The notes: a model not told the origin generated them from the letters alone. A stretch of DNA of 64,000 bases from Phaeosaccion multiseriatum (GCA_965112735.1 OZ218965.1:62001-126000), one strand, 5' to 3'; shown: positions 779 through 64,000, counted from the first letter of the stretch. Program-made: numbers and translations.

Positions 779-3700
779 TCACCAGTAGAATGTCCCCGGC
801 AGGTACTTGTTGACGAGGGGCTCGAGCCACGCACGCGCCTGTGGAACAGAGGGCGCTTGGCGGGAGGGAGGGAAGCTCGACCCGGGGGGGCTCGACCCGG
901 GGGGGCTCGACCCGAGGGGGTTGCACATGCTCACGCTGCGGACAGTGGCTCTGGAGGGAGGGAGGGAAATATCACCGGGGGGGGGGGGGTAAGCGGTGTC
1001 AGGACGGGGAACCGTTTGCACACTCGTCTCTTTGCCCGCACTCCCTCTGCCTCTCGCTCCCTCTCGCTCCCTCTCCCCCTCTCTCCCGGTCCCTCCCCGC
1101 CCTCCCCTCCCTCCCTCCTCCCTCCCTCCCTCCCTCCCTCCCTCCCTCCCTCCCTCCCTCCCTCCCTCCCTCCCTCCCTCCCTTCCCCTCACTCTGCCTC
1201 ACCTCCTCACAGCGTCGAACTGCTGCACCTTGCCGAGTACCTCCCTGTCCCTGTCACTCTCGAGCTCTCGATACGCCCCTCTGGCGTGCCACAGCTCTAG
1301 GGGCCAGTAACGCACCAGAGAGAGAGCCTCCGGGGGGAGGTGGTTGCTGGGATGGCAGTGGATGGCAGTGGATGGCAGTGGATGGCAGTGGATGGAAGTG
1401 GATGGCATATGGGCACCGGAGAGTGTCAGGACGGGTTAGGGTTAGGGTTGGGACCAACACCCAATAAGGAGGGCTGCCTGCCCGCATGCCTGCCCCCCCT
1501 GCCCTCCTTGCCTGTCCCACTCCTCGTATCACCAACTGCTGAACTGACCTGGAGCGTTTGTTGCTGAGCACCGCGTGAAGGTACTCGGTGCCTGCCCATG
1601 GCAGCAGCACGGCATCCAACCCGCACCCCGCACAGTTCATACCCAAGGGGGGCACACTGTAGAGGGGGTGCAGGCAGTCGGAGTTGAGCTGCAGGGGAGA
1701 GGAGGGCAGGGCAGGGGGGTAGGAGGGCAGGGCAGGGGGGTGGTCCCACATGGTTCCAGATGGTTCCAGATGGTCCCAGATGGAAAAAGGGCAAATCGTC
1801 CGACATGGTCCCAGATGGTAGGAAGAGGGTCAGTCAGAGGCAGACAAGAGCTGTCCCCCATACTCGGGCATATGGGCGGCGTGGCAAAACAGCAAGAGCC
1901 CCCACAGCGCCCTAAAAGGGCTCTTGGCCGTGTGTGGTGACCGCTCAGCTCCCCTCTCCTCCCGTCCCTCCTCTCCCCATCTACTGCATCTCTTTCCCGT
2001 CCGCTCCCCATCCACTGCCATCCATCCATCGTCATCCCTGCCCCTCCATCCACTGCCATATCCCCTCTCCATCCACTGCCATCCCCCCCCCCCCCCCTAC
2101 CTGGTGGTACTCGCGGCAGGCGATACCCTCTGGGAAGGGCGCCCCCACTACCCATTGGGACTCCGAGAAGGCATTCTCGCGGGCCTCCCTCAACCTCTCG
2201 AAGCTGCCTCTCTGCTGAGGCTGTACGACCAACTGCTGTGGCTGTGACTCTTGTGCTTGTTGTTCGCGGCTGTCGCCATCGCCATCGCTCCGGTCTTTCC
2301 CCACCCCTCCCTCTGAGTCCTGAGCCTCCCCCCGTCCCTCTGTGTCCATCCCTGTGTCCTGACACCCGTTGTGGCGTGTGAGAGACAGCAGCGCACCCAT
2401 CCCATGCACGAGACCCACCACCTGCAGGCATATGGGCAGGGGTGCGTTAGAGGCATATGGGCAGGGCTGCATTAGAGGGGCGCAGGAGGGTGCTGCATGA
2501 ATAGATTGAGGTGCCTGAGGTGGAGGGGAAAGGGCGCAGAAGAAAGACAACAAAGAGCATACAGCACACAGGCATATGGGCATACGGGCATATGGGCCTG
2601 ACAGGGTGTGTGCGTGCATGCGTCCCCCTCTTACCTGCATCCAATCGGGGAAGCCTTTGTCCCTGAGGTCCTGTGCTGTGAGCAGGAGGAGCTCCAGCAC
2701 CGTCACGTGGAGCTTGCAGTAGGGAAAGCGCATGTCCTGCAGCCGCTCCAGGGCCTGCCACATGGAGAGGTTCAAGCACACACCCCCTGCCACATCGGAC
2801 TCGTATCTACAAGGGAGGGACGGAGGGAGGGAGGGAGGGAGGAGCAGGGAGGGAGGGGGGGGGGGAGAGGGAGGGAGGGAGGGAGGGAGGGAGGGACGGA
2901 GGAAGAGAGGGAGAAAGGGAGAGAGAGGAGGCAGGGGGAGAGAGGGAGAGTGCGGGAGAGAGGCGCAGAGAAGGGAGAGAGAGGGAGGAGGTAGAGAGGG
3001 AGAGAGGGAGAGAGGGAGAGAGAGGGAGAGAGGGAGAGAGGGAGAGAGGGAGAGAGGTAAAGAGAGAGAGAGGGAGAGAGGGAGAGAGGGAGAGAGGGAA
3101 AGAGAGAGGGAGAGAGAGAGAGGTAGAGAGGGAGAGAGGGAAAGAGAGGGAGAGCGGTCGCGTTGAGGTTGAGGCCAGCGTGACACGATATCCCTCCTCT
3201 GTCGCCCCGGCATCTGCTGCCATCTAGGGCACCTCCTTTCCCTGCTACCCACCCACTGCCCATCCACTGCCCATCCACTGCCATCCATTGCCATCCACTG
3301 CTATCCACTGCCGTGTACCTGGTCCTCTTTCCCCTGACGTAATCGACGGTCTGCCTCTCGCACATGCGCTTCTGTCGCTGCTGCACGCTAACCATGAGGT
3401 CCTGACACTCTTGAGAGCGCGAGGAGTCCTCCCATCCGCTGCCATCCTCCTCCCCCCCGAGGGGGCCTTCCTCATCGCTCACCAGCCCCACAAATGTGTA
3501 CACGCCCCTGCACAGAGCACACAAGGGATGGGGTCACGCACACACACAAACACGAGATGGGGTCACGCACACACACAAACACGAGATGGGGTCACACACA
3601 CACAAGAACGAGAAAGAGAGGACGGAAACGCGAGAGAGAGAGAGAGAGCGCAAAAGAGAGGTAGAGAGAGGTGAAGTCCCTGCTGAAGCACCAACCTGTC

Positions 3701-61000: not shown

Positions 61001-64000
61001 ATACGGGCATACGGGTTTCCGGACATATTGATGCACACACACACAGATACACATACACACACACATACACGCACACACATGCACACACACGAATACACGC
61101 AAAGAGAGACACAAAAACACATGCAGCAATGTTAAGCAGTGTCAAGCCAACGACCTCACACCCTCTCCCCGTGTTACTTTCACCAATTGGAGGCATACGA
61201 GGCACCGCACGCACACACACACACACACACACACACACACACACACACACACACACACACACACACACACACACACACACACCTGCACATGCGTCTTGGC
61301 CGTGAGCCTCGACAGGGTCACCTGCTCCTCCGGGATGGCAGTAGATGGCTGCAGCAGCCCCTCGAAGAAGCCACTACTACTGCTACCGCTACCGCTACCA
61401 CTGCTTCCACTGCCGCTGCCACCGCTGCCGCTCCGGCTGCCCTGCTCTGCTGCTGCTGCGGAGGAGGAGGAGGAGGAGCCCTGCTGTCCCCCTAACTGGC
61501 CCTGCTCCTGCTCCTGCTTGCCTCGGAGCATGCGCTTGAAGGCGCTCTGTAGACAGGCCCTGTCCACCCCGTCTCTGAGCAGCCTTGCCCACTGCACCGC
61601 CTCCCCCACCTCCACCGCCCTGCCAACCCCGCCATCTGTGACTGTGGCCGCCGTCGGAGCGACGGATCGAAACTCGTACGACGTGTTGGAGGCGGTCTGT
61701 ACGAGAAAGTCAGCGAAGCCCCCCTGGGGATCGAGGTCGCGGTCGCGGTTCGGGGCACGCAGCGAGAAGAGCACTACTGCCCCGGGGGGAAGCTCCTCCT
61801 CTGCTGCCATCCGCCCCCCCCTGGGTGTGATCGAGCGGTTTGAAGTTGGGCTGGTGCCCTCGTGCTCCTCCTCGCCCACACTCTCCAACGAGCCTCGGCG
61901 GCGGTGCGCAGGCGACTTCAAGCCACTCACTGATGCTCCTTCTCCTGCTCCTCCTGTGGCACTACCGCTCGGCGGGGAGAACAAGGGGAAAGAGTCACCG
62001 CGGCTGGAACTTGAACTTGTCCCTTCCGCAACCCCCTCCCCTCCACTGAAGCGCACTCTCCCCGTACGGAGGGAGGGAGAGCCCTGCCCATCCACTGCCA
62101 TCCCCCGCCTCCCCCTTGGGGTATGTGACGGTGTCAGGACCGGCAGTGGAGAGAGCATACCGGCGTCGAGCAGCTGCTGCAGCAGGGCCTGTGTATGTGC
62201 GTGCGTGTGCGTGTTATCATGCGCGTGGTCCTCTCCTTGACAAATGCCCAACAGCGATCGCCGCCACTCCTCCCAAGACCGAATGCTGCTGCTGCCTCTG
62301 CCGCCTCCGGAATCTCCCCCCTGGGGCAGGCCCTCGGGCAGGCTGCCCCCCTGGGACTGGGGCAGGCATATGGGCAGGCTCTTGTAGAGCTGCACCGCCA
62401 GGGCACAGAGCTCAGTGCGATTGAGCGGCTCCGCCCCCGCCCCTCGCCCACTCCTGCTTCTTGTGCGCGTGTGCCTTCCTTTCCCGCCGCCGCCATCTGT
62501 GAATCGTCTGCCGCTGCCATCTGTGACTCTTCTGCCGCTGCCCGCATGTCTGCTACCCGTATGCCTGCCCGGAGGAGCGTCGTGCGACAGGGTGGGTGTC
62601 CTTGGAGCTTTCGGAGACTTGCCTCCCGCTCGAGCGGCACCAGCCGCATCAGTTGGTGATACAGCGGGAGCAGCAGCAGGAGGAGGAGCAGGAGCCGGGG
62701 GGGAGCTTGATCCGAACATGAGACTCATTGCTCCGTCCATAAAGCCCGACAAGCCGCCCCCTTCGCCTCCCTCGCCGTCCGCTGCCATCCCCCTCCCCTC
62801 GGTGGTGGTAGCCGGGGCTGCTGTCCTGGGATGGCGCTGCCAGACCTTCGCTCCATGAGGTGCACTCCTTATCAAGTGCTGCTTGGAGAGAGAGAGAGAG
62901 AGAGAGAGAGAGAACCCAATTGACACTCGTCACAAGAGCAGGAAAAGGGGCTGGCTGTCCAAAGGTCGTGGAGAAGAAGCAGAAGGGACACGCAGCAAAC
63001 AGAGATACAGACCGACGCACGCACCCACCACGCAGGCACGCACGCACCCTCCAATCCCTCCATCCACTGCCATCCCATACCCCATGGCACTCACCGGGAG
63101 CGGCTTGGTGTTGGGCCCCAAGTGGACAACGCCCCTGAGCTCGTGCTGCTTCTCGTCACTAAACAGGTACAGCGCATCCCCCTGCAGCACACAGTAGCGC
63201 CGCTTCCATCCACTGCCATCCCCCCCTCCCCACAGGGAAGTGGAGCTGCCCTTGGTGCCCCATCCCGCGCCCCCCGGGGGCCCTCTACTCTGCCACGGCC
63301 GCTGCAGCAGGAATCCCCTCTTGCTCGCCCCTGTGAGGTCAGGGAGGCGACGTGTCAGCTCCAAGCGGCGGTGGCGGGTGAGCACATCGAGGGGGTAATC
63401 CCGCCCCGTCCAGATGGCAGCAGATGCCTCCCCTCCCTGTTGGAAGTCCACCCTCACAGCCCTCGACGCCGCCACCGGCTCGTCCCACGTGTACGCCGCA
63501 GAGGCGTAGGGCTCCAGATGGTCCCAGACGGCTCCGTCTGAAGAGCCCGAGCCACCTGAGGATGAAGCTGATGCGCCACCCACCCCCACCCCAACCTGCC
63601 GGTAGCGGATCCGATGGCTGGTGAGGTTGTCCACTCGATAGGGCGGCCAGCGGGGAGAGGGGGCGCTCAGCACGACGGTTACACTGCCTCCTACCACCTC
63701 CACCTTGGCTGTGATGATCACCACCTCCGGGGAGGAGGGAGCCTCAGAGGAGGGGGATGGCAGTGGATGGTGTGCTGCCTTCTTGCGCCTGAGCTTCAGG
63801 GGCACCTCCCCGAGATTGTCGGGCTTGAAGGAGCCCGACCACTCCCATCCACTGCCATCCCTCTCCCCTCCATTGCCATCCCTCTCCCCTCCATTGCCAT
63901 CCTCTCCCACTGACGGAGGAGTCGAGCCTGCGAAGCGCACCTTCAGCAGCTTCTTACGATCTGGGGATGGCAGGGGTTGGCAGGGGATGGCAGTGGAGGG
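55087..64000 (-). CDS. VPS13: VPS13-family lipid transfer protein, C-terminal portion (gene begins beyond the right edge)
   Basis: VAB/SHR-BD motifs PPYRVDNLT..IRYRQ and YTWDEP. Then RADGPTKVL, VGLSLVD..PEELVY, LDNQM, LDFLGDPVGLLNNLSTGVKDFFYEP, GITGVVMEPVKGADKEGVLGFGKG and KPVVGVFD, followed by C-terminal PH-like domains. TGA at 55087. Confidence 0.93.

Follow-up and report, generated by a model that had tools for sequence, protein, structure and literature searches.

A short intronic word whose orientation follows the G-to-C build of its host introns in a 64-kb stretch of the Phaeosaccion multiseriatum genome

The 64,000-nt stretch of the Phaeosaccion multiseriatum genome considered here (GCA_965112735.1 OZ218965.1:62001-126000, hereafter the window) contains dozens of copies of a short sequence word that gathers at the ends of introns and takes opposite orientations at the two ends. 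The G-rich orientation of the word is referred to as the G-form and its reverse complement as the C-form, both read in the sense of the transcript. It is best regarded as the most successful among a class of intronic repeats that all obey a G-to-C build of the introns, and its polarity is inherited from this build rather than being a code carried by the word. We give about an even chance to the explanation that it is a short intronic repeat which spreads at the DNA level and is retained where its orientation fits the intron build. A first-pass annotation of the same DNA had proposed that the word is a candidate code for intron-end pairing or splicing; a word-specific pairing code is only partly supported, with three tests of its specificity failing or borderline.

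Abundance and structure of the word

The window is intron-rich and has a G+C content of about 60%. The exact 10-mer is matched 59 times on the two strands as against 0.35 matches expected from shuffles, and it ranks first by frequency among the non-simple 10-mers of the window. Base composition leaves this abundance unexplained, the expected count being far below one. Rotations of the unit reveal a core of 16 nt (window 22038-22053) that consists of a 6-mer, four bases and the same 6-mer again. This core is present in 41 exact copies and in 27, 23 and 18 further copies with one, two and three mismatches, where about one is expected in all. Tandem runs comprise 2-9 units arranged head-to-tail with a period of exactly 10 bp and vary in number among sites; Tandem Repeats Finder (TRF) reports 10-bp arrays at 1350-1407, 3249-3312, 20627-20679 and elsewhere. 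The first-pass annotation's description of dozens of copies, often in 10-bp tandem and in genes on both strands, is thus borne out. Because of its built-in 6-nt direct repeat the core is prone to slippage. Copies grade in their mismatches from exact to degenerate, and the units of the arrays follow one another in perfect tandem, as would be expected of ongoing copying and decay.

About a quarter of the introns in a home-made gene model, described below, bear the word, and its copies are clustered by gene. No G-quadruplex is predicted for the 16-mer by ViennaRNA with quadruplexes allowed (minimum free energy, MFE, of 0), inspection of the word revealed neither a branch point nor complementarity to small nuclear RNAs, and primers are the only literature matches to its sequence among the 20 matches listed.

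Two other repeats are found in the vicinity of the word. A telomere-type repeat (TTAGGG, 2.8 units) at 1433-1449 adjoins the 5-unit word array in the minus-strand intron 1347-1548. A second dispersed word, the 11-mer GTTGGTGATAC, is flanked by CAG/GCA runs and occurs at window positions 452, 1526, 15678, 51783 and 62652; one copy lies 12 nt past donor 1548, and the 11-mer has no clear intron-end polarity in the window.

Position and polarity relative to splice sites

The G-form lies 7-58 nt past donors and the C-form 4-45 nt ahead of acceptors, and this is true for genes on both strands. In transcript sense, 18 introns have the G-form in their 5′ half and one has it in the 3′ half; for the C-form, 18 introns have it in their 3′ half and four in the 5′ half. 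For the G-form, 17 of 19 introns have their nearest copy no more than 60 nt from the splice site concerned, and for the C-form 17 of 21, where uniform placement predicts 5.5 and 6.2, and the arrangement that had been noticed at first sight (the G-form just downstream of donors and its reverse complement just upstream of acceptors) is therefore well founded. The density of word clusters is 2.3 per kb in the outermost 60 nt at intron ends, compared with 0.4 in intron interiors, 0.5 in called exons and 0.3 in intergenic DNA. Read in the G orientation, every copy is preceded by either an exon-GT junction or the complement of an AG-exon junction, from which it is separated by a short G-rich spacer of variable length.

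The first-pass annotation had further emphasised that the orientation of the word flips with the gene strand. The polarity relative to the transcript is real, but the flip is in part a geometric necessity since an inverted pair reads as G-form followed by C-form on either strand. The non-trivial facts in the polarity are the absence of the opposite order and the closeness to splice sites. Departures from the pattern comprise the C-form near 21180 on the donor side, which had been singled out as an exception and is genuine: the intron is 127 nt long and the C-form sits 35 nt past its donor. A further copy, at 8814, lies in mid-intron, and three (56095, 56694 and 63211) are exonic and in frame. 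Because the last of these is an exact 16-nt copy in frame in the coding exon of a PH domain, the word is able to enter exons.

A general G-to-C build of the introns

Introns that lack the word are themselves polar. Their first 80 nt contain G at 0.32-0.37 and C at 0.20-0.25, whereas their last 80 nt contain C at 0.32-0.43 and G at 0.16-0.21. Runs of four or more G number 10-11 per kb within 80 nt of the donor and 0.8 per kb within 80 nt of the acceptor, and C runs change in the other direction, from 2.4 per kb on the donor side to 16.5 on the acceptor side. The same build is followed by 94 intronic tandem arrays unrelated to the word, the sense-strand GC skew of which declines along the intron (Spearman -0.59, p 4e-10), with 24 G-rich and 6 C-rich arrays in the first intron third as opposed to 5 and 20 in the last. 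Acceptors are preceded by an AG-free stretch with a median length of 70 nt, or of 108 nt if the C-form is present, compared with 22 nt in a mirror control on the donor side. The sequence TCCTGACAC recurs ahead of acceptors in the 3′ parts of four to five introns (for example at window 1440-1450 on the minus strand) and is probably the branch-point consensus (CTGAC); it is often situated 60-100 nt upstream of the AG.

The two forms of the word are matched to this build. The G-form suits the donor side because it is G-rich and contains AG and GT, and the C-form suits the tract between branch point and acceptor because it is 75% pyrimidine and contains neither AG nor GT; the polarity of the word is for these reasons inherited from the intron build. 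The composition of word-free intron ends predicts odds of G-form to C-form of 5:1 on the donor side and 1:24 on the acceptor side, and the observed 17/18 and 17/17 show no orientation bias beyond this composition-matched null (p 0.34 and 1.0), a result that goes against a pairing code specific to the word. In annotation the polarity is of practical use, since the transcribed strand can be read off from how the word and other intronic repeats are oriented.

Spread and retention of the word

Abundance, position, polarity, the general intron build and the near-independence of the two halves are direct observations, and the abundance together with the closeness to splice sites calls for both a copying process and a retention bias. 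In the mechanism that we propose, the word would multiply as DNA in either orientation, possibly through repair or recombination between G/C tracts, and would expand locally into tandem runs via slippage. A selective filter would then let copies persist only where their orientation suits the transcript, so that the G/purine-rich donor zone would keep the G-form and the long C-rich, AG-free tract before the acceptor would keep the C-form. Where both forms come to lie in one intron they could pair and bring the splice sites together, which would be a by-product and not the reason for the word.

A number of points weigh against this explanation. The raw co-occurrence of the two halves is significant (odds ratio 5.0-5.6, p 0.005-0.008), and a permutation stratified by gene is borderline with seven introns that contain both halves versus 4.0 expected (P 0.05). 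Private variants are shared by both arms in two of these seven introns (20625/21010 and 25486/25607), which could reflect compensatory change or copying from arm to arm. The closeness of the word to splice sites exceeds that of plain G or C runs (about 2-fold for such runs; 2.3 against 0.4 clusters per kb for the word), and something either targets the word to the neighbourhood of splice sites or retains it there. The copying mechanism is not directly seen in the window, and all statistics are drawn from a single window of 64 kb with home-made gene models that lack RNA support.

Pairing of the two intron ends

The first-pass annotation had reported five introns with both halves; all five are confirmed, and 60656-60871 and 63743-63940 bring their number to seven. 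In each of them the G-form is no more than 60 nt from the donor and the C-form no more than 45 nt from the acceptor, and in five of the seven the MFE fold joins the first 60 nt to the last 70 nt (z -1.5 to -6.5), so that the intron ends are predicted to zip together. One of the seven, the minus-strand intron 57019-57231, interrupts a conserved VPS13-type C-terminal motif.

These folds, the significant raw co-occurrence, the placement of both forms directly beside splice sites and the variants common to both arms in two introns all agree with a selected bridging element, in which the G-form pairs with the C-form in the pre-mRNA and joins the splice sites in the manner of the zebrafish (AC)m-(GT)n repeats. 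There are precedents in the fish repeats and in the co-occurrence of GGG and CCC in human introns, which the fish study also reports (PMC4691745). We nevertheless consider a selected bridge to be rather unlikely. Only a single half is present in 22 of the 29 word-bearing introns, and the halves are close to independent once genes are stratified. Co-occurrence across exons, that is of a C-form with the G-form of the next intron, has an odds ratio of 3.4 (p 0.054), similar to the 5.6 (p 0.005) across introns, whereas the fish signal is confined to introns. Nor are the arms specific to their intron, as in word-bearing introns those of the same intron pair no better than those of different introns (-58.9 vs -59.6 kcal/mol); over all introns, end duplexes within an intron are marginally stronger (-31.7 vs -29.0, p 0.08). 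The donor-side G excess and the acceptor-side C excess do not covary in word-free introns (rho 0.09), and the word does not appear to compensate for weak donors, those of word-bearing introns being no weaker than others.

A distinctly unlikely variant regards the word pair as a true intron-definition device that was spread by an undescribed copying process targeting G/C tracts by exon borders. If bridging is true, the word would be the first repeat of complex sequence, rather than a dinucleotide, to bridge splice sites by pairing within the pre-mRNA.

Other alternatives

The two forms could also be separate binding sites, the G-form being a G-rich intronic enhancer and the C-form a module of the pyrimidine tract, or the word could act in DNA as a signal for nucleosomes or a DNA-binding factor at exon borders. 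This would account for a closeness to splice sites that goes beyond composition, for the independent occurrence of the halves, for the period of exactly 10 bp, which is near the helical repeat of DNA, and for the pair being found around exons at about the same frequency as around introns. We judge it improbable, in that no factor is known, no G-quadruplex is predicted for the 16-mer, splice-site strength shows no difference between word-bearing and other introns, and the exact reverse-complement identity of two RNA sites would require an origin at the DNA level in any case.

The least probable alternative, to which we attach very little weight, is that the halves are eroded terminal inverted repeats left by a transposon that creates introns (an introner or miniature inverted-repeat transposable element, MITE), each word-bearing intron being an insertion; the inverted arrangement at both ends of an intron, whichever strand the gene is on, fits this, but tandem expansion and exonic copies are ill-suited to transposon ends, and in most introns a single perfect half is present without any remnant of its counterpart. 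Furthermore, an all-against-all blastn comparison of the 140 introns gave matches of 24-90 nt only in the word arrays. At the junctions, the longest direct repeat has a mean length of 4.18 nt if the intron bears the word and of 4.16 nt if it does not, a comparison that does not reveal a target-site duplication. The word carries no acceptor and has no fixed register with the splice sites, given the range of its offsets.

The RPS6 gene (window 7.8-10.6 kb, plus strand) allows a comparison with three Logan contigs of relatives, the RPS6 of which is estimated from aligned exons to be about 80-90% identical. The word-bearing introns 8708-8960 and 9060-9309 are missing from all three contigs, as an introner would predict. 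The position of intron 9421-9684 is common to the three relatives, the orthologous introns of which lack the word, and hence the word can sit in an old intron; the intron before FRISGG is also common to the relatives. Taken together, the word is not an introner, though it may yet be linked with the gain of introns 8708-8960 and 9060-9309.

Gene models and individual copies

Genes were modelled with a home-made gene finder built on a periodic Markov coding model and splice-site matrices; repeats were masked, introns had to exceed a minimum length, and the strand was chosen by segmentation. The output comprises seven strand blocks and 140 introns. Five introns were corrected by hand from the sequence and conserved protein motifs, as the model reads through a few introns, and splice sites were also checked by reading their flanks. 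Nearly all donors and acceptors listed in the first-pass annotation were recovered in this way. The minus strand is anchored by Pfam matches to GNAT (6.2-6.8 kb), an oxidosqualene cyclase (45-48.6 kb) and the PH domain (63 kb), and the plus strand by ribosomal protein S6e (8.96 kb) and ABC1 (23.8 and 24.4 kb). The oxidosqualene cyclase is 51-53% identical to the enzymes of Phaeothamnion, brown algae and Nannochloropsis, which points to an ochrophyte alga that has no near relative in the protein collection used; proteins of the window itself are not part of that collection. Long four-base arrays at 29446-29888 (GACT/CAGT, about 100 units) are able to mimic tiny GT-AG introns in gene calling. 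Four sequencing runs hold about 90% of the stretch and are probably DNA, because introns are included in the matched portion. The individual copies are listed in Table 1.

Table 1. Copies of the word in the window, with forms in transcript sense and the strand of genes or splice sites in brackets
Position	Strand	Copies and form	Setting
1351-1400	+	5-unit array, C-form	ends 4 nt before acceptor 1347; intron 1347-1548(-)
2013-2083	-	3 copies, G-form	start 17 nt past donor 2100; intron 1689-2100(-)
3276-3305	-	degenerate array	immediately past donor 3318(-)
5920-5929	+	C-form	17 nt ahead of acceptor 5903(-)
8814-8823	-	C-form	mid-intron positional exception; intron 8708-8960, RPS6 (+)
9288-9297	-	C-form	12 nt ahead of acceptor 9309 (RPS6); intron missing in relatives L001-L003
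9654-9663	-	C-form	21 nt ahead of acceptor 9684 (RPS6); intron position common to relatives, theirs without the word
14433-14442	-	C-form	24 nt ahead of acceptor 14466(+)
15761-15770	-	G-form	26 nt past donor 15796(-)
20625-20674	+	5-unit array, first unit a private variant	15 nt past donor 20610; ABC1 kinase gene (+)
21010-21019	-	C-form with matching private variant	10 nt ahead of acceptor 21029; partner of the 20625 array
21185-21194	-	C-form, exception noted at first pass	35 nt past donor 21150; 127-nt intron
22039-22048	+	G-form	9 nt past donor 22030; intron 22030-22173 with both halves
22135-22154	-	2 C-form units	19 nt ahead of acceptor 22173
22289-22339	+	degenerate G-form array	40 nt past donor 22249
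23981-23990	+	G-form	41 nt past donor 23940; preceded by a related 9-mer repeat
24337-24432	-	4 C-form copies	end 15 nt ahead of acceptor 24447; ABC1 exon next
25486-25495	+	G-form	7 nt past donor 25479; intron 25479-25633 with both halves
25607-25616	-	C-form	17 nt ahead of acceptor 25633
26961-26970	+	G-form	35 nt past donor 26926
27844-27906	-	2 C-form copies within a 53-nt duplication	18 nt ahead of acceptor 27924
28553-28562	+	G-form	17 nt past possible GC donor at about 28536 (aag/gcgagg, possible GC-AG intron); gene model uncertain
40284-40293	+	one-mismatch copy, C-form	16 nt ahead of acceptor 40268(-)
50952-50971	+	2 G-form units	58 nt past donor 50894(+)
56095		exonic in-frame copy	exon
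56694-56703	-	G-form sense	Gly/Ser-rich low-complexity stretch; called exon by the gene model
57064-57073	+	C-form	45 nt ahead of acceptor 57019; intron 57019-57231(-) with both halves
57169-57205	-	2 G-form copies	26 nt past donor 57231(-)
57552-57797	+	9 copies, C-form, higher-order repeat	start 32 nt ahead of acceptor 57520(-)
60103-60168	+	5 units, C-form	28 nt ahead of acceptor 60075; intron 60075-60392(-) with both halves
60356-60375	-	2 G-form units	17 nt past donor 60392(-)
60695-60704	+	C-form	39 nt ahead of acceptor 60656(-)
60834-60843	-	G-form	28 nt past donor 60871(-)
63065-63074	-	G-form	20 nt past donor 63094(-)
63211-63220	-	exonic in-frame G-form copy	exact 16-nt copy (63205-63225) encodes Gly-Ser-Gly-Trp at the start of the PH domain
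63756-63765	+	C-form	12 nt ahead of acceptor 63743; intron 63743-63940(-) with both halves
63840-63901	-	4 G-form copies	38 nt past donor 63940(-)
63966-63995	+	degenerate C-form copies	5 nt ahead of acceptor 63961(-)

Comparison with known systems

Micro- and minisatellites share with the word the head-to-tail arrays (here of 2-9 units), the mixture of intact with decaying copies and a direct repeat inside the core that promotes slippage. Unlike them, one complex unit has been seeded in the alga at dozens of distinct places and keeps a strict position and orientation relative to splice sites. Intronic repeats of 10-11 nt may, reportedly, be described in the Emiliania genome paper. If its intron build holds genome-wide, the alga would be a useful system for asking by what route very short words of DNA come to be dispersed among genes while showing none of the marks of a transposon.

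Introners are MITE-derived introns of Micromonas, Aureococcus, dinoflagellates and others (review PMC11282704; Gozashti et al. 2022, 10.1101/2022.06.06.494994). The algal introns resemble them in having inverted sequence at both ends whatever the gene strand, and differ in that they are without family-wide similarity, a target-site duplication, a fixed offset from the splice site or a splice site within the word; moreover, the word is younger than at least one of the introns in which it sits.

As far as bridging is concerned, a close counterpart exists in the structured (AC)m-(GT)n introns of zebrafish and other teleosts (Lin et al. 2016, Genome Res 26:12, PMC4691745). In that study the central evidence is the co-occurrence of the repeats across introns and not across exons; the repeats are reportedly needed for correct splice-site pairing, and splicing of this type is reportedly independent of U2AF2. 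Both systems have complementary repeats inside opposite intron borders and a stable bridging helix predicted when both are present. In the alga, however, the unit is a complex 10-mer and not a dinucleotide, the halves occur mostly alone, their association across introns does not clearly exceed the one across exons, and bridging is only predicted. The system may be useful for asking whether complementarity of intron ends aids splice-site pairing outside vertebrates.

The general build of the algal introns has its nearest described analogue in the GGG...CCC co-occurrence of human introns, as presented in PMC4691745, where the G-triplet/C-triplet build of short GC-rich vertebrate introns is attributed to McCullough and Berget. 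As in those introns, G runs follow the donor and C runs precede the acceptor as a property of the whole intron. The algal case differs from the vertebrate one in that the polarity spans nearly all intronic tandem repeats, the AG-free tracts extend over 60-100 nt, and a single 16-nt word is superimposed on the build in about a quarter of the introns. If the build holds genome-wide, the alga would represent an extreme natural case of compositionally polar introns, to which nearly every intronic repeat conforms.

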